Shown: piece after piece, positions 6,353-35,351 of the stretch
How positions within the stretch are numbered: position 1 is the first letter of the stretch
Layout of the letters: each line of letters opens with the position of its first letter
From: Octopus bimaculoides
Lineage: Eukaryota
Assembly (NCBI RefSeq): GCF_001194135.2
Contig: NC_069005.1
Coordinates: forward strand, 15,752,903-15,789,089
Reading direction: 5' to 3'
DNA: 36,187 bases
Notes under the pieces: model-generated
Database searches by the model: none
The model's input: only the letters and a program-made list of their open reading frames with translations
What the model was told of the DNA's origin: nothing
Program-made: the position numbers and the translations under genes

Positions 6353-6765
6353 ATAGGGTGGTTGTGTGGTAAGAAGTTTGCTTCCCAACCTTATGGCTCT
6401 GGGTTCAGTCCCACTGTGTGGAACCTTGGGTAAGTGTCTTCTACTGTAGCCTCCTCAGACCAACCAAAACCTTGTGAGTGAATTTGGTAGCTGGAAACTG
6501 AAAAGAAGCCCATCGTATGTATATATATGTATATATTTATGTGTGCGTGTTTCTCTGTGTCTGTATTTGTCCCCCCACCATCACTTGACAACTGATACTG
6601 GCATGTTTATGTCCCCATAACTTAGCAGTTCAGCAAAAGAAACTGATAGAATAAGTACTAGGCTTACAAAGAATAAGTCCTGGGGTCGATTTCTTTGACT
6701 AAAATCCTTTAAAGTGGTGCTCCAGCATGGTCACAGTCAAATGACTGAAACAAATAAAACAATAA
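6353..6765 (+). mobile_element. SINE family A, full length
   Basis: Colinear with 59-448 and 1733-2126. Confidence 0.85.
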
Positions 6766-6863
6766 ATAAAAGAATATATATATATAGAGAGAGAGAGAGA
6801 GGGAGCCTTCTACGAATCCATGTGAGAAAACATATGCTCTCGTATCTTTGCCAATAGAGTGAG

Positions 6864-12072: not shown

Positions 12073-13509
12073 CTCTTTAGATACCAACCTGTCTGAAGCT
12101 ACCTCTGGCTCTCTGATACAAGCTTTAGTCTTCAAATTACTCTGATAAATGTAAGACTTATTTATTCATATTGTTCAAAATTAATCAAGCATTGAGTTAA
12201 TATTTATCCCCATTTAAATGTGGATGTTCTATTATAACAAACTATAATGCAGTAGATACCATGAGAGAAGCTCTCACATTGGCTTTTGGTCCATATAAGC
12301 ACTCTTGTTTATATCACTAGTGGGGAGATAAATCACCACCCATCTCCAGTGCTGAGACCACCTGATCACATGATTGCAATCTTCCTTGGTCTCGTTCATG
12401 ATGGATGCTCAACTGCTAGAGGTAGGTAGCAGCAACTCATCTCCCTGCTAAAAGTACATAGAAAAACAGTGCCAGAACAGGCCTTGGTGTCATGATTAGC
12501 CAATTAGAAGATATACATTAGCGACAGAGGCAGTATTCATATCAAGAGGTAATATTTATCCCCACTTAAACATGGATGTTCTATTAGAACAAACTATACT
12601 ACAGTAGATACAATGAGAAACTCTGATATTGGTTTTTGGTGTTAAATGCACGCTAGGAGGGAGATAAATTCCTGCCATCTCCAGTGCTGAGACCACTAGA
12701 TGATTTGATTTTGACCTTACTTAGCCTTTTCAATGATGGACGCTTGACCGCTAGAGATAGCAGCAACTCATCTCCCCACTTGCAATATATTGGAAAACAG
12801 TGCCAGAACAGGCACTGGTGTTACGATTAACCAGTGATCTTGTTAAAAGATATATATTAGCGACAGAGGCAATATTAATTCTGTGAAGTAATATGAATCC
12901 CCACTTAAACATGGATGTTCTGTTGGAATAAACTACATTGTGGTAGATACCATGTGAGGAACCCTTATACTTACTTTTGGTGCAAATGCACTCTTGTCAA
13001 TGTATTGTCTCATAGCTTTGAGATTATAATGATGTTATTGTCTATTTTTAAAATGGCAATGAAGGGTAGATGTGACAGAGTACATCTGGCTAGTTTGAAC
13101 ATGAAATAGATAAAATATTGGGCCGGACATGGCCAGTTTAAATGCGAAAAGGTTAAAGTGATCTAAATTTAAAATTTCCATCGAAATTTTTATATAAATT
13201 TAAGTCTCAAAACCCAGCTTAGTCCCTTTACTGCAGAAATCAGATATAGCCACTCAAAATTTTATTACCCTTAAATGTAGAAAGTAGTTTTATATATCAA
13301 TCTATCTTCTGTTGAGGAATGTCATGTTTGAAACAGCATGACTTTCAGAAAATACCAATTCTACTTTTGATAAATATTTAACATCATTATTAGAATAACC
13401 GTGAAAATTAATTCTGTAGTTACAGGGTTAATGAAGACAAAGTTATTTTAATAAATTCATTAATTCAAACATGCAATGTATTTCAACAGGAATATGGTAA
13501 CAGAAAGGG
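12073..13509. mobile_element. piggyBac-type MITE (family I) containing a nested family H MITE and a tandem array
   Basis: TTAA at 12069-72 and 13510-13; left end CTCTTTAGATACCAACC, right end GGTAACAGAAAGGG; family I resumes at 13157 (AGTGATCTAAATT) after the TTAA that closes family H. Confidence 0.65.
12198..13000. repeat. Tandem array of a ~340-350-bp unit (about 2.3 copies) with HINE-like internal termini
   Basis: Units start at 12198, 12550 and 12889 (TAATATTTATCCCCA.TTAAA..TGGATGTTCT); shared ACAGTGCCAGAACAGGC and CATTAGCGACAGAGGCA motifs. Confidence 0.9.
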
Positions 13510-19343: not shown

Positions 19344-19630
19344 NNNNNNNNNNNNNNNNNNNNNNNNNNNNNNNNNNNNNNNNNNNNNNNNNNNNNNNNN
19401 NNNNNNNNNNNNNNNNNNNNNNNNNNNNNNNNNNNNNNNNNNNNNNNNNNNNNNNNNNNNNNNNNNNNNNNNNNNNNNNNNNNNNNNNNNNNNNNNNNNN
19501 NNNNNNNNNNNNNNNNNNNNNNNNNNNNNNNNNNNNNNNNNNNNNNNNNNNNNNNNNNNNNNNNNNNNNNNNNNTGTATATATATATATAATCATCATCA
19601 TTTAGTACAGACAATAAATGACGATGATGA

Positions 19631-19670
<40 letters not shown>
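19262..19670. repeat. (TA)n/(TG)n microsatellites around an assembly gap (N 19344-19573)
   Basis: Direct inspection. Confidence 0.95.
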
Positions 19671-19671
<1 letters not shown>

Positions 19672-19830
19672 CAGAACTTTTTTTTTGCTACAAAACCTAA
19701 TGACGGGGAAAGTTACTAAAAAGAAGGAAGACAAACAGACAGTCTAAGTTTGGAACCTGATAATTGTAATTCAGTTTTACACATGATTTCTTTAGTTGAA
19801 ATTACTTTTCTATTATCATATCTTCTGCAT

Positions 19831-20010
19831 AAGGCAGTGAGCTGTCAGAACTGTTAACACACTGGGCAGAATGCTTAGCAGCATTCCATCTCTCTTTACA
19901 TTCTAAGTTTAAATTTTGCCCAAGTCAACTATACATTTCATCCTTTTTGGAGTTGAACATTGAGATCAATGTAACCAACTTTCACCCTCCCACCACAAAT
20001 TTCAGGATTA
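19831..20010 (+). mobile_element. SINE family E
   Basis: AGGCAGTGAGCTGTCAGAA...TTTCATCCTTTTTGG...AAATTTCAGG. Confidence 0.75.
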
Positions 20011-21059
20011 TTAGTACCTCTACCTTAGCGAAGGCAGAGATATTGTTTCAGTTGTGTTTGTTTACTTGTTTGTCCGTGGACAAGATATCCCAAGAACTGC
20101 TGGATGGATTTGCATGAAACTTTCAGGGATGTTTGGCCTCATGACTGGCATGAACTGATTAGATTTTGGAATCAATCTGGTACCGAACAAGGATTCTGGA
20201 TTGTTATATTTACTTTACATTACATGAAGTATTATGATCTTATGTTGACTTTCAAGTTTTTCTCTGATAATCTCTCTTGAAAGTATGCTCATGGTTTCCA
20301 TATAAGTTATGGCAGTGTTGCTGTTTCCAAAGTATTCTCTTTCTCTATTATTAATTTTACTCGCATCTCTCTCTTAGTAGAAACCGATGGATAAAGAAAT
20401 CAAAATACATAAACAAACGGCAGTAAAACTGTTCAGAAATTAAATAACACTAACATATTCAGTAACAAAAATAAATTTAATTTATCCACAACAATTTTAG
20501 TTGTACCAATTTTGAATATATTGCTCCTGTTTAAAACCACTTACCTACTTGACAATTGCATTTCTAGCTCTGTCTTGAAGGAAGCTTTACTTCTTGGACT
20601 CATGTTTTTGTGTGCAACAATGTTAAACTTCCGTTAACAGCACCGTATGCAGGTCCTTTCCATTTTCTTTTGTGCATGGATAAATTTTTCACTGTAGACT
20701 TTAATGGTTGTAAAGACACTCTATCAGTGAATAGACTAAAAAAGGCCTTCATAGAGAAAACTGTCCCTGTTCCAACTGCAGACGACACACACACACAGCA
20801 TTACAAACATGGCTTGCACACCCACCTTCACATTCCATGATGACCATTGGGATCAATGAGGTACTGGACAAGGATTCTAGATTATTTTGTTTTTTTTTTT
20901 ACTTAATTTTTGAGAGCGGTTGCATTCAGTTTTAGTATTCTCATTTGTGAAAGCAGTCAAGTTTATTTCAGATTTTCTCATTTTCAAAAATCATCTTCGT
21001 CTAATTGCTGAGAGGACATTGGCGTTGCTTTAGTGGAGGTTTGCACTCTCTGAGTGCTC

Positions 21060-21062
<3 letters not shown>
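20011..21062 (+). mobile_element. Helentron-associated non-autonomous element (HINE/DINE-1-like) with internal cargo
   Basis: 5' TACCTCTACC with a nearby inverted GGCAGAG; (GTTT)n tract at ~20052-20072; 3' subterminal GTGGAGGT followed by the hairpin GCACTC-TCT-GAGTGC (21043-21057) and TT. Confidence 0.7.
20598..20756 (+). pseudogene. Ty3/Gypsy integrase C-terminal GPY/F module fragment
   Basis: THVFVCNNVKLPLTAPYAGPFHFLLCMDKFFTVDFNGCKDTLSVNRLKKAFIE fits the THVFVR..PL.PPY.GPF.V......FT....G....VS.DRLK.A pattern. Confidence 0.8.
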
Positions 21063-21090
<28 letters not shown>

Positions 21091-21110
21091 CATTATTATT
21101 ATTATTATTA

Positions 21111-21144
<34 letters not shown>

Positions 21145-21228
21145 CAACCCCAAAAAAGGATGAAATGTATAGCTGACTTGGGCAAAATTTAAACTTAGAA
21201 TGTAAAGAGAGATGGGATGCTGAAAGTA
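21059..21228 (-). mobile_element. (ATT)n tract followed by a partial SINE family E
   Basis: CAACCCCAAAAAAGGATGAAA...AATTTAAACTTAGAATGTAAAG is the reverse complement of the E core. Confidence 0.65.
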
Positions 21229-21309
21229 TACACAATATAAAATAGAATAAAGAAAGAGAGTATACATAGTATACAACAGTAAAAAAAAATAATATTAATA
21301 ATAATAATA

Positions 21310-21390
21310 AATCACGAGTGGTTATGGGTTTGAATGCCTTTCTTCACAGGTCGGCTCAGTTACAGCTGACCTAAGGCTAAGCAACAACAA
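21310..21390 (+). mobile_element. Family G tail
   Basis: GAATGCCTTT...GCTGACCTAAGGCTAAGCAACAACAAC. Confidence 0.5.
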
Positions 21391-21696
21391 CACACACAAA
21401 CATAAATACAGATGAATGAATCTTTACAGCAACAGCTAATGAAACTAGACACAGTTTTTATAATGAAACTAGACACAGTTTACAATGTCTGATGAGTCAC
21501 CAGCTTTTATCTCACTACACAAGACTTCAAAACAACAGTTCCATATTGCACTGACATCTATATAATACAGGTACAACATAGATTTTCCAGAATCTTTGGT
21601 TCCAGAGGATTTCTGAATTAGTGGTTTTTCCAAACCAGGAGTGATCACCATGCTCAATACACATTGAATTAAACAAATATTTAATGTACTTATAGA

Positions 21697-21902
21697 TGCA
21701 GATGTGGTTGTATGATAAGAACACTACTTCATAACCACATGGTTCCGGGTTCATTGTCACTGTACAGCACCTTGGGCAAGTGTCTTCTACTATAGCTTTG
21801 GGCTAACCAAAGCCTTGTGAATGGATTTGGTAGACCGAAACTGAAAGAAGCATGTTACATATATATATATAGATATATATATATATCTATATATATATAT
21901 AT

Positions 21903-21933
<31 letters not shown>

Positions 21934-22087
21934 CAGGTGGATGCGTGGTAAGAAGCTTGCTTTGCAACCACATGATTCCAGGTTCAGTCCCACCATGTTG
22001 CACCTTGGGCAAGTGTTTTCTACTATAGCCTTGGGCTGAACAAAGCCTTGTAAGTGGATTTCGTAGACAGAAGCTAAAAGAAGCGCA

Positions 22088-22090
<3 letters not shown>
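21697..22090 (+). mobile_element. Two tandem SINE family A heads (21697-21855 and 21934-22090) separated by TA/GATA repeats
   Basis: Each has GTGGT..AAGA...CACCTTGGGCAAGTGT...AAAGCCTTGT...AAAGAAGC. Confidence 0.8.
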
Positions 22091-22147
<57 letters not shown>

Positions 22148-22149
22148 CC

Positions 22150-22500
22150 TTATCATCATAATCGTTTAATGTCCGTTTCCCATGCTGGCATGGGTTGGAT
22201 GGTTCAACTGGGGCCTGGGAAGCCAGGAGGCTGCATCAGGCCCCAGNNNNNNNNNNNNNNNNNNNNNNNNNNNNNNNNNNNNNNNNNNNNNNNNNNNNNN
22301 NNNNNNNNNNNNNNNNNNNNNNNNNNNNNNNNNNNNNNNNNNNNNNNNNNNNNNNNNNNNNNNNNNNNNNNNNNNNNNNNNNNNNNNNNNNNNNNNNNNN
22401 NNNNNNNNNNNNNNNNNNNNNNNNNNNNNNNNNTATGTGCTACCAGCACAGGGCTCACAACTACAATTTCCATTCAATTTGATTTTGATATTGCTGATGT
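22150..22500 (-). mobile_element. SINE family B spanning an assembly gap (N 22247-22433)
   Basis: CATCATAATCGTTTAATGTCCGTTTCCCATGCTGGCATGGGTTGGATGG before the gap; CACAACTACAATTTCC after it, as in 30078-30370. Confidence 0.7.
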
Positions 22501-24094: not shown

Positions 24095-24650
24095 TCTCCA
24101 CTGGTTACAACAATGAGGGTTCCAGTTAATGCAATCAATCAAACAGCCTACTCGTGAAATTAGCATGGAAGTGGCTGAGCGCTCCACAGGAGATTCAGTG
24201 TGACACAGAATAATGTGACAAAGCTGGCTCTTTGAAATACAGGTACAACTCATTTTTGCCAGCTGAGTGGACTGAGCTGATAAAGTATCTTGGTCAAGGA
24301 CTTGGTCAAGGACTTGGTCAAGGACTCACTGCACCACCAACACACTCCGTCAGTTATGATGACAAGGGTTTCAATTGATCTGATCAAAGGAACTACTTAC
24401 TCGTGAAATTAACTTGCAAGTGGCTGAGCACTCCACAGACATGCAGACCCTTAACGTAGTTCTCAGGGAGATTCAGTGTGACAAGGCTGGCTCTTTTGAA
24501 TTACAGGAACAACTAATTTTTGCCAGCTGAGTGGACTGGTGCAACGTGAAATAAACTGTCTTGCTCAGGGACACAATGCACCACTGGGGATCAAACTCAT
24601 GACCTTATGACCGTGAACCAAGTGCCCTTCTCCACTAAGCTGCACACCTT
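24095..24650 (-). mobile_element. Two tandem SINE family L copies (head and central domain shared with C)
   Basis: TACTCGTGAAATTA.C.TG.AAGTGGCTGAGC.CTCCACAG...TTTTTGCCAGCTGAGTGGACTG is repeated at ~24148 and ~24398. Confidence 0.8.
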
Positions 24651-27611: not shown

Positions 27612-28084
27612 AAGAACTTGAGTTGATCAAGTAATGTTGAGTTCTTATGATCAAATAACATTTGCCTAATTTATTCAAGCAGACCAATGCAACAAAGGTA
27701 GACAATTAATCCTTTTGATTCTAACTCTGTCCAAGACTAACCCTGATTCTAGGACACAGATTTCCTGTTTTAAAGTCATCTAAATTAAAGCTTCTGCTTT
27801 ACATTAAAGTTTCATGCTAAATTACATAATGACAAAGAATTTGAGTTGATCAAGTGATGTTGGTTGTTGAAGTAGTTCTTATGATCAAATAACATTGGTC
27901 TCAGATGTTTAAGCAGATCAATGCAACAAAGGTAGACAATTAAACCTTCTGATAACCTGCCCAAGCCTCTCACCCCACTCTGCGTTATGGCACAGACTTC
28001 TTATTTTAAAGTGATCCAAGTTAAAGCTTTCCATCAAAGGTTCATGTTAACTCAAAGGTTCCAAACAGCTTAATAATGACAAAG
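27612..28084. repeat. Old tandem duplication (period 223 bp) spanning the left end of a family I MITE
   Basis: TTGAGTTGATCAAGT.ATGTTG...GTTCTTATGATCAAATAACATT...CAATGCAACAAAGGTAGACAATTAA occurs at 27618 and 27840. Confidence 0.85.
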
Positions 28085-33261: not shown

Positions 33262-33705
33262 AAATAGGTGCAGGTGTGGTAAAAAGTTTGCTTCCCAGCC
33301 ATATAGTTCTAGATTCAATCCCACTTGGGCAAGTGTCTTCTGCTAGAGCCTTGGGCCAACCAAAACCTTGTGAGTCAATTTGGTAGATGGAAACCGGAAG
33401 AAATCCAGTGTGTGTGTGTGTGTGTGTTTGTGTGTATGTGTGTGTGTGCATGTTTGCATGTGTGTATGTCTGAGAGAGAGTGTGTTTGTTTCTCCTTGTC
33501 TTGACATGCGTAATTGTTGAAAATGAAGGCCATTCGTTTACAATATTCTATGAAAATAAGTCTGGCAATAGGGAAAAATATTATTTTGCTTGGAAACAGG
33601 GAAAAGTTGGCCACAGGAAGAACATCCAGCTATAGAAAATCTGGCTTGGTAAACTCTGTCCAACCCATGCAAGCGTGGAAAAGTGAACATCAAAGCCATG
33701 ATGAT
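33262..33705 (+). mobile_element. Composite SINE: family A head, then (TG)n, then family K body and tail
   Basis: GTGTGGTAAAAAGTTTGCTTCCCAGCC head, then TCTCCTTGTCTTGACAT...CCAACCCATGCAAGCGTGG. Confidence 0.7.
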
Positions 33706-34344: not shown

Positions 34345-34946
34345 CCCTTTAGCATCCAGATTACTCTATCAAATGTACTGCTTATTTTTATTCTTTTACT
34401 TGTTTCAGTCACTTGACTGTGGCCATGCTAGAGCATTGCCTTGAAGGATTTTAGTCAAACAAATCGACCCCAGTACTTATTCTATCATGTCTTTTGCTGA
34501 ACTGCTAAGTTACAGGGATGTAAGCACACCAACACTGGTTGTCAAGCAGTAATGGGGGACACAAACACAGACATAAAGACACACATACACACAAATATAT
34601 ATGACGGGCTTCTTTCAGTTTCTGTCTACTAAATCCATTCACAAGTCTTTGTTCAGCCCGAGGCTATAGTAGAAGATATTTGCTCAAGGTGGCATGCAGT
34701 GGGACTGAACCTGGAACCATGTGGTTGGGAAGCAAACTACTTACCACACAGCCACACCTGTGCCTATTCATTCACATTGTTTTAAATTAACCATGCATTG
34801 ACTCATAGCTTCAAGATTTCAGTGATGTAATTATTTATTTTAAGAATGACATTGTAGGGTAAGTGTGAGAGGCCAGATCTGGCTGGTTTGAACATAAAAC
34901 AGGTAGAATATTTGGGTCTGATACGGCCAGTTTAAATGTGAAAGGG
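34345..34946. mobile_element. piggyBac-type MITE (family H) containing a SINE A insertion
   Basis: TTAA TSD at 34341-44 and 34947-50; termini CCCTTTAGCAT / ATGTGAAAGGG. Confidence 0.85.
34391..34764 (-). mobile_element. SINE family A, full length
   Basis: Reverse complement of 59-448. Confidence 0.85.
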
Positions 34947-35104
34947 TTAAGGGGTGGGGTAAGACTGAGATGTCTTTGTCTGCTCATGGATACAAGAGAA
35001 CCTAAAACAATCAGTAAAAGCATCAGATATACTACCAAGTATATGCATACCATTTCTACCAAGAAGGTAGGTGATAGCTATAGTACAAGGGAATGGGTTC
35101 AGGA

Positions 35105-35260
35105 TTGGTGGTATGGCTAAGAAGTTTGCTTCCCAACCACAAGGCATCAGGTTCAGTCCCACTGTGACGCCTTGGGCATGAACCTTCCACTATAGTCCCA
35201 GGCTGACCAATGCCTTGTGAGTAGATTTAGTTGACAGGAACTAACTAAAAGAAGCCCATC
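35105..35260 (+). mobile_element. SINE family A head
   Basis: AAGAAGTTTGCTTCCCAACCAC...GGTTCAGTCCCACTG. Confidence 0.75.
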
Positions 35261-35276
35261 ATTTTTGTGTGGGTGT

Positions 35277-35307
<31 letters not shown>

Positions 35308-35351
35308 CATATATATATATATATATTATTATTATTATTATTATTATTATT

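Follow-up and report, generated by a model that had tools for sequence, protein, structure and literature searches.

A HINE-like element in Octopus bimaculoides enclosing a Ty3/Gypsy integrase fragment between two copies of a conserved box

How does a short non-autonomous transposon come to enclose a piece of a retrotransposon, and do the two ends that bracket this piece belong to one element or to two? The question is raised by a locus of Octopus bimaculoides within a 36,187-nt stretch of contig NC_069005.1, positions 15,752,903 to 15,789,089 (hereafter the window), in which a first-pass annotation, made from the sequence alone, had described HINE-type 5' and 3' ends around a Gypsy integrase fragment. 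Our analyses established the anatomy of this composite, the family assignment of each of its pieces and its position in one microsatellite. The features, in window coordinates, are as follows.

19832-20017, plus strand: SINE-like repeat of the left flank with an ATTATT(AGTA) tail, 71-86% identical to other copies in the window; the insertion target, outside the element
20018-20039, plus strand: 5' terminal hairpin and sub-terminal inverted repeat region, CTCT.CCTT AGCG AAGG.AGAG, from folding and profile
20022-20034, plus strand: 5' subTIR, ACCTTAGCGAAGG in the window against ACCTCCGCCAAGG in the family, placed by profile
20022-20204, plus strand: HINE 5' module, comprising subTIR, microsatellite, conserved block and box
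20051-20079, plus strand: degenerate (GTTT/GTCY)n microsatellite, which aligns with the (GTCT)n block in the profile
20149-20216, plus strand: repeat copy R1 (core 20168-20202), family 'box-a', positions 87-136 of the long-form reference
20217-20567, no strand assigned: segment X, anonymous AT-rich DNA (29% G+C) without matches
20568-20837, plus strand: 3' fragment of a Ty3/Gypsy pol, integrase C-terminal GPY/F (SH3-like) module, 90 stop-free codons
20836-20897, plus strand: repeat copy R2 (core 20849-20883), its tail at reference positions 126-154; same box as R1
20898-21064, plus strand: HINE 3' module
~21027-21040, plus strand: 3' subTIR, GCTTTAGTGGAGGT
21043-21057, plus strand: 3' hairpin GCACTC-TCT-GAGTGC, with the terminus CTCTTATT near 21064
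21060-21144, plus strand: (TTA/ATT)28 microsatellite of the right flank (TRF period 3, 28.3 copies)
21144-21222, minus strand: inverted partial copy of the left SINE, 95-97% complementary to 19879-19956

Genomic setting and insertion site

The window is AT-rich (~36% G+C) with a CpG observed/expected ratio of 0.22; it contains three N gaps, and SINE-like repeats make up a large share of its sequence. Its repeats match loci of O. bimaculoides and O. sinensis at 78-93%. The composite lies on a 2.7-kb contig between the gaps at 19344-19574 and 22247-22433, almost all of which consists of repeats, and scans of 19575-21400 against Rfam and for tRNAs gave nothing above threshold. Next to the first of these gaps, positions 19577-19671 are occupied by a compound microsatellite arranged as a palindrome, (AT)n(ATC)n ... 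(GAT)n(AT)n, with weak sub-threshold matches to miRNA hairpin models that are probably a low-complexity effect only. A second interspersed repeat of ~400 bp, with copies 70-81% alike, occurs at 58-471, 1723-2129, 6355-6786, 21685-22141, 33266-33467, 34381-34769 and 35091-35322, and is also present in O. bimaculoides and O. sinensis loci (L122, L123). Self-comparison of the window additionally revealed tandem local duplications of 74-75% identity (12194-12654 and 12546-12994; 24116-24274 and 24365-24538; 27612-27820 and 27835-28050).

The left SINE, with 19832-20009 as its extent, terminates in ATTATTAGTA; its other copies end in ATTATT... after a CAGG(CCTTG..) block, and one of them reads ATTATTAGTATT. 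On the other side of the element the right flank, TTATT(ATT)28, has the same strand and the same unit as the tail of the left SINE. The arrangement ...ATTATTAGTA / element / TTATTATT... is compatible with insertion at a TT within an (ATT)n tail, with no obvious TSD and with the exact ends unfixed, and without the element the two flanks would join into one continuous (ATT)n tail. Most simply read, the right microsatellite would be the continuation of the left SINE's tail, and both HINE ends would have arrived together at a TT. That one SINE (ATT)n tail encloses the whole composite is in keeping with a single element and speaks against a pair of independent halves; as (ATT)n arrays are common in octopus DNA, however, this argument is suggestive and does not amount to proof.

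The two SINE arms that flank the composite (19879-19956 and 21144-21222) are 95-97% alike, while the other copies in the window are 70-87% alike and lack the variants TTTAAATTTT and CTATACATTTC that the arms share. This high likeness, together with the shared variants, suggests that the arms arose by a local inverted duplication or have undergone gene conversion with each other.

Termini and their family

The ends of the element were compared with a profile of 17 short, structurally complete elements from metagenome contigs, which were classed as HINE-type by their architecture and not by a curated library. With nhmmer, profile positions 3-179 matched 20022-20204 (E 1.2e-14) and profile positions 219-255 matched 21027-21063, that is, the end of the 3' module (E 3.2e-6). 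These matches are collinear 5' and 3' parts of the profile and occur nowhere else in the 36 kb, bearing out the HINE-type ends of the first-pass annotation. BLAST matched the 5' module to six loci (L022, L025, L074, L088, L090 and L116) at 70-77%. Such identity of the left module between the octopus copy and the metagenome hosts is unusually wide conservation for a non-coding transposon.

Folded as DNA, the 5' hairpin reaches -4.4 kcal/mol (z -3.05) and the 3' hairpin, which is intact and lies ~7-10 nt from the terminus, -5.2 kcal/mol (z -3.25); the 3' palindrome is kept in more than 120 relatives. The subTIRs of the decayed window copy (20022-20034 and 21027-21040) pair at only 8-10 of 13-14 positions, a pairing that is not significant alone. 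Among the relatives recovered through the common 3' motif, 22 of 121 have 12-nt subTIRs, perfect or with one mismatch, within 1.3 kb.

That motif, GGAGGTTTGCACTCTCTGAGTGCT, is the 24-nt sequence at 21035-21058, made degenerate at four positions and scanned against JGI metagenome contigs. It was found in more than 120 of them (a lower bound; loci L002-L121), with ~2 expected by chance as an estimate, and these contigs have an extended 3' terminus in common, CCTTGGC-GGAGGTYTGCGCTCTCYGAGTGCT-(T/C)TT(CTAG)TT. They are animal DNA, with a forkhead-like ORF on L006 and LINE RT-like ORFs on several. Neither the 3' motif nor the core was found in collections of viral and prokaryotic genomes. The short complete elements on these contigs measure 230-330 nt. 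They start with TTA-CCTCCGCCAAGG-AGGTTATGTTTT, followed by (GTCT)n, the conserved block, one box (TTTTGG..GATCC..GGATTCTGGATCAC), ~40 nt, CCTTGGCGGAGG, the hairpin and TTTCTAGTT. Their subTIRs, CCTCCGCCAAGG and CCTTGGCGGAGG, are perfect over 12 nt and lie 3 nt from the 5' end and ~40 nt from the 3' end, and the 3' palindrome has a 6-nt stem ~10 nt from the T-rich terminus. Long members of the family (~400 nt; L013, L016, L027, L041, L046, L049, L066, L080 and copy 2 of L102) carry two related boxes ~200 nt apart.

Canonical Helitrons begin with TC, end in CTRR, have a hairpin ~11 nt from the 3' end and show A/T insertion. Such TC...CTRR ends are absent here; the termini of the family read TTACCTCC... 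and ...GAGTGCT(T/C)TT(CTAG)TT, and the window copy ends in ...CTCTTATT. The sequences of these termini were not found in the literature searched. Six-frame translations of both HINE modules had no matches in a word-indexed protein search, and in the metagenome loci visual inspection of the 45 longest ORFs (>=140 aa) in the 9 kb preceding the motif revealed none that resembled a Helentron. Judged by its sequence, the element is non-autonomous and Helentron-type (HINE or DINE-1-like), old, CpG-decayed and devoid of coding capacity of its own; its tie to an autonomous Helentron would be one of architecture only. The octopus and other animal hosts share the conserved termini and the left module of one HINE family, and the main gain at present is an annotated HINE copy in a cephalopod genome.

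A sample of 229 kb of O. bimaculoides and O. sinensis DNA, taken around eleven relatives of the enclosed Gypsy fragment, contained no second copy of the composite. The only other HINE sequence in this sample was one unrelated 3' end, GGCGGAGGTCTGCGCTCTCCGAGTG, on the minus strand of L131 (positions 6-46; O. bimaculoides CM046602.1), which is canonical and has intact CpGs. It is preceded by ~450 bp of GGT/GAT-rich minisatellite-like sequence and belongs to a different, apparently younger subfamily in the same genus.

The duplicated box and the enclosed DNA

The core pattern GGNATCAATNNGGTACNNNACAAGGATTCTNGATT, 35 nt in length, has exactly two matches, 20168-20202 and 20849-20883, both on the plus strand, and none of 100 shuffled sequences matched it; the core that had been reported twice, at ~20165-20205 and ~20847-20888, is therefore real and could be placed exactly. 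Around it, an ungapped 51-nt repeat (20166-20216 against 20847-20897) is 78% identical (BLAST E 5e-6), and a gapped alignment extends the repeat ~15 nt leftwards, to 20149 and 20836, giving a full repeat of ~50-68 nt. A lenient alignment of 130 nt that would extend the duplication rightwards, into 20217-20352 and 20898-21006, was rejected, since the part beyond the box, taken by itself, did not stand out from shuffled sequence (z 1.3, with 52 of 500 shuffles as good). Copy 2 of L102 served as the long-form reference for aligning the boxes. Both cores align to box-a, which rules out that they are the a/b box pair of the long-form architecture. Since R1 and R2 both represent the first box, which is single in the short canonical members, the window holds a real duplication of one box.

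R1 and R2 differ at 20-22% of positions, a Jukes-Cantor distance of 0.19-0.25, or 0.10-0.13 per copy on the assumption that they began identical. For repeats of O. vulgaris, copy-to-consensus distances of 0.09 and 0.12 correspond to ~25 and 33 My (PMC13282606). With this calibration the divergence of R1 and R2 would make the duplication event tens of My old, a rough figure from ~50 sites.

A similar arrangement was encountered once among the 121 loci, in L102 (minus strand, metagenome animal host), where a 1.2-kb partial tandem array ends at the 3' motif. The first copy of this array runs from its 5' end to reference position 182, is interrupted by an unrelated GC-rich insert of ~320-372 bp and resumes at position 125; the resulting duplication of 55-58 nt is 74.5% identical and overlaps the box region that is duplicated in the octopus element. 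The adjacent tandem copy is uninterrupted and has no insert. Partial head-to-tail dimers of the HINE family are also present in L062 and L068. L024, considered as a second analogue, was discarded as merely two neighbouring HINE copies.

The insert between the repeats occupies 20217-20835 (619 nt) and consists of segment X (~350 bp) and the Gypsy piece (~268 bp). Of the earlier description, an insert of ~640 bp with a stop-free Gypsy integrase C-terminal module of 53 codons, the identity of the module stood; its open frame is longer, with 90 codons followed by a stop at 20838-20840, and it accounts for only ~268 of the ~620 bp, so that more than half of the insert is anonymous DNA. Segment X had no protein or DNA match in the window, the 229 kb of octopus loci or the 120 metagenome loci, nor any Rfam or tRNA match.

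The Gypsy frame has 769 homologues at E<=1e-3 in a representative library of 1.84 billion proteins, named, for instance, 'gypsy-29', 'Gag-Pol polyprotein' and 'K02A2.6-like'. In the full-length homologues the matching stretch lies after the rve core of RVT_1 / RT_RNaseH(_2) / Integrase_H2C2 / rve polyproteins, and BEL/Pao-specific Pfam domains are absent from them. The fragment itself gave no Pfam match, and its peptide none in a word-indexed protein search. Its nearest relative is XP_014777061.1, from a Gypsy remnant of O. bimaculoides (55% amino acid identity over 84 residues). At the DNA level, 20578-20807 is 74% identical to the locus of this protein (L001), in which RT, RNase H and IN stand in Ty3/Gypsy order, and 73.5% identical to another O. 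bimaculoides copy (L123). A copy from O. sinensis (L122) shares 67% identity with 20578-20832, and all three alignments begin at 20578.

The pol homology ends no more than ~15 nt from R2, the Gypsy piece directly adjoining this repeat, and the last ~24 codons of pol are missing. Upstream of ~20568 no likeness to pol was found in any frame, and the sequence around the fragment had no match in the Gypsy loci fetched. Throughout the 36 kb, tblastn with full-length pol proteins matched only 20559-20837, in agreement with the annotated absence of other pol sequence. The peptide retains APYAGPF, that is, the PY.GPF of the GPY/F module, and conserved arginines have become cysteines (VFVR to VFVC, NGRKDT to NGCKDT), as expected from CG to TG decay. 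With these Arg to Cys changes and without the last ~24 pol codons, the Gypsy piece is, on the evidence of its letters, a dead fragment. Given the sharp boundary between X and the Gypsy piece, and the loss of both ends of the latter, the donor probably consisted of a Gypsy remnant that was fragmentary before the capture, together with the DNA next to it. Between R1 and R2, no HINE sequence was detected by BLAST, by profile or by shuffle-tested alignment. A nested DNA transposon or a LINE-type insertion was also considered for the insert and rejected, there being no TIRs and no poly(A) or A-rich end.

Origin of the composite and comparison with known systems

We consider it probable that one HINE took up foreign DNA at its conserved box and that this left the flanking duplication. 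A single capture event would have occurred during copying or repair of the HINE: just past the box, synthesis would have switched from the HINE template to ectopic DNA, probably a Gypsy remnant that was already truncated, together with its neighbour, and would then have re-entered the HINE upstream of the exit point, duplicating the box. Template switching, or synthesis-dependent break repair with filler DNA, is one model for gene capture by Helitrons, and the footprint of the filler-DNA route is an unrelated insert without transposon ends between direct duplications of host sequence. The insert described here is bounded by a ~60-nt direct duplication and has no transposon ends, as template switching or filler-DNA repair produces, and it is from this established knowledge that we infer such a mechanism. 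The data are compatible with the earlier proposal of a retrotransposon domain transduced by a Helentron. Counting against a capture by one HINE are the single copy to hand as a basis for the octopus subfamily consensus, the decayed subTIR pairing, the frequency of (ATT)n arrays, the occurrence of the analogue at one locus of 121 and the unexplained origin of X.

The first-pass annotation had also offered the alternative that two HINE halves bracket pre-existing DNA. In this scenario, two independent truncated HINEs of the same orientation would flank resident DNA, one cut after the box and the other before it, with a coincidental overlap of 50-68 nt, and the pair could later act as a composite. 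The 20-22% divergence of the boxes is what one would expect of independent copies in an old family, and HINE copies do sit near each other, as in L024. However, this alternative needs two truncations that overlap by the same box in the same orientation and two outer ends inside the same (ATT)n SINE tail; the L102 analogue has the same box overlap, and the family is sparse, with no other HINE in the window and one unrelated 3' end in 229 kb of octopus DNA. Two independent insertions are thus disfavoured, and we regard them as unlikely.

An equally unlikely origin, in our judgement, is a head-to-tail partial HINE dimer, a common rolling-circle by-product, whose interior was later replaced by unrelated DNA including the Gypsy remnant. 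Partial tandem dimers of the family do exist (L062, L068 and L102), and tandem Helitron copies with truncated inner ends have been mentioned for the oyster (PMC7492417); yet the stretch between the boxes holds no trace of a 3' module or of the 5' module, the part that the family conserves best, and the Gypsy piece directly adjoins R2. Finally, the composite could be an assembly artefact, a chimeric join of reads from different repeats on a short-read contig bounded by N gaps, and the 2.7-kb length and repeat-rich content of this contig would suit such an error. The boxes, however, are at ~80% identity too dissimilar to bring about a false join or a k-mer collapse, the sequences at the junctions are not identical and the parts of the element are collinear with the family profile; we therefore give an artefact hardly any credence.

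Returning to the uptake of DNA by one HINE, the capture possibly preceded arrival at this locus, in which case the Gypsy fragment would be mobilised cargo, an order of events to which we give somewhat less than even weight. The capture may instead have taken place after the HINE had arrived, and one copy fits either timing. We look with considerable doubt on the more far-reaching idea that the conserved box of this HINE family, which would extend across animal phyla, is a preferred entry point for foreign DNA, with a defined route of capture that produced a box duplication of ~55-65 nt independently in the octopus element and in L102, and that the octopus composite subsequently transposed and spread the SH3-like module of a Gypsy integrase. 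Further genomic copies of the composite, should they exist, would make it a clear instance in animals of retrotransposon DNA carried along by a Helentron-type element, the junctions on either side of the capture being still intact. A recurrent box duplication would provide a concrete footprint of DNA acquisition by HINEs, the mechanism of which has so far only been modelled. As a HINE with captured DNA, the composite belongs to the ordinary by-products of transposon activity and does not represent a new type of element.

The enclosed module can be compared with its intact counterparts. The GPY/F module of Ty3/Gypsy and retroviral integrases was reportedly described by Malik & Eickbush in 1999, and we take it to be Pfam SH3_Tf2-1 (PF24626). 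As in this module, the matching stretch directly follows the rve core in the homologues and carries PY.GP[FY] and then ...DK.F..D..G....S..RLK. Unlike full GPY/F integrases, the octopus locus holds the module alone, with no rve core or RT and apparently no LTR, and with the Arg to Cys changes.

HINEs, or DINE-1-like elements, are the non-autonomous partners of Helentrons (Thomas, Vadnagara & Pritham 2014, PMC4067079). They are recognized by subTIRs of 11-15 nt located 2-4 nt from the 5' end and ~38-60 nt from the 3' end, by a palindrome with a 5-10 nt stem 8-35 nt from the 3' terminus and by T-rich or TT targets without TSD (PMC4067079). The family described here resembles them in the placing of the subTIRs in its short complete members, in its 3' palindrome and 5' microsatellite, in its T-rich termini, apparently in its T-rich target and in having no coding capacity of its own, captured fragments being occasional in the described elements (PMC4067079). 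It differs in that its subTIR and terminus, CCTCCGCCAAGG ... GGAGGTYTGCGCTCTCYGAGTGCT, were not found in the text or supplements of that study and in that the window copy has a duplicated internal box around foreign DNA (PMC4067079).

Among molluscs, the Cg_HINE elements of the Pacific oyster carry GTCY/GTCC/GTCK microsatellites in their left flanks (Vojvoda Zeljko et al. 2020, PMC7492417). The octopus element is likewise molluscan and has a left module with subTIR, IR and GTCY-type microsatellite, a variable middle and a right module of ~60 bp with subTIR and palindrome (PMC7492417). The middle of the oyster elements, however, consists of satellite-like tandem repeats, whereas that of the octopus element is a retrotransposon fragment, and the subTIRs differ, CCTCCGCC and GGCGGAGG not being found in the supplements (PMC7492417).

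Helentrons are also known to carry captured gene fragments, as in Helentron-Cq-32A with its fragments of histone H4/H1 (PMC4067079). Similarly, the octopus composite holds part of a foreign coding sequence, internal and non-functional, that has the element's own orientation and a decayed frame. The fragment in Helentron-Cq-32A is present in eight copies and was mobilised (PMC4067079), whereas the octopus composite is known here from one copy. In contrast to Helentron-Cq-32A, the octopus fragment came from a transposon rather than a host gene, and the insert is bordered by a ~60-nt duplication.
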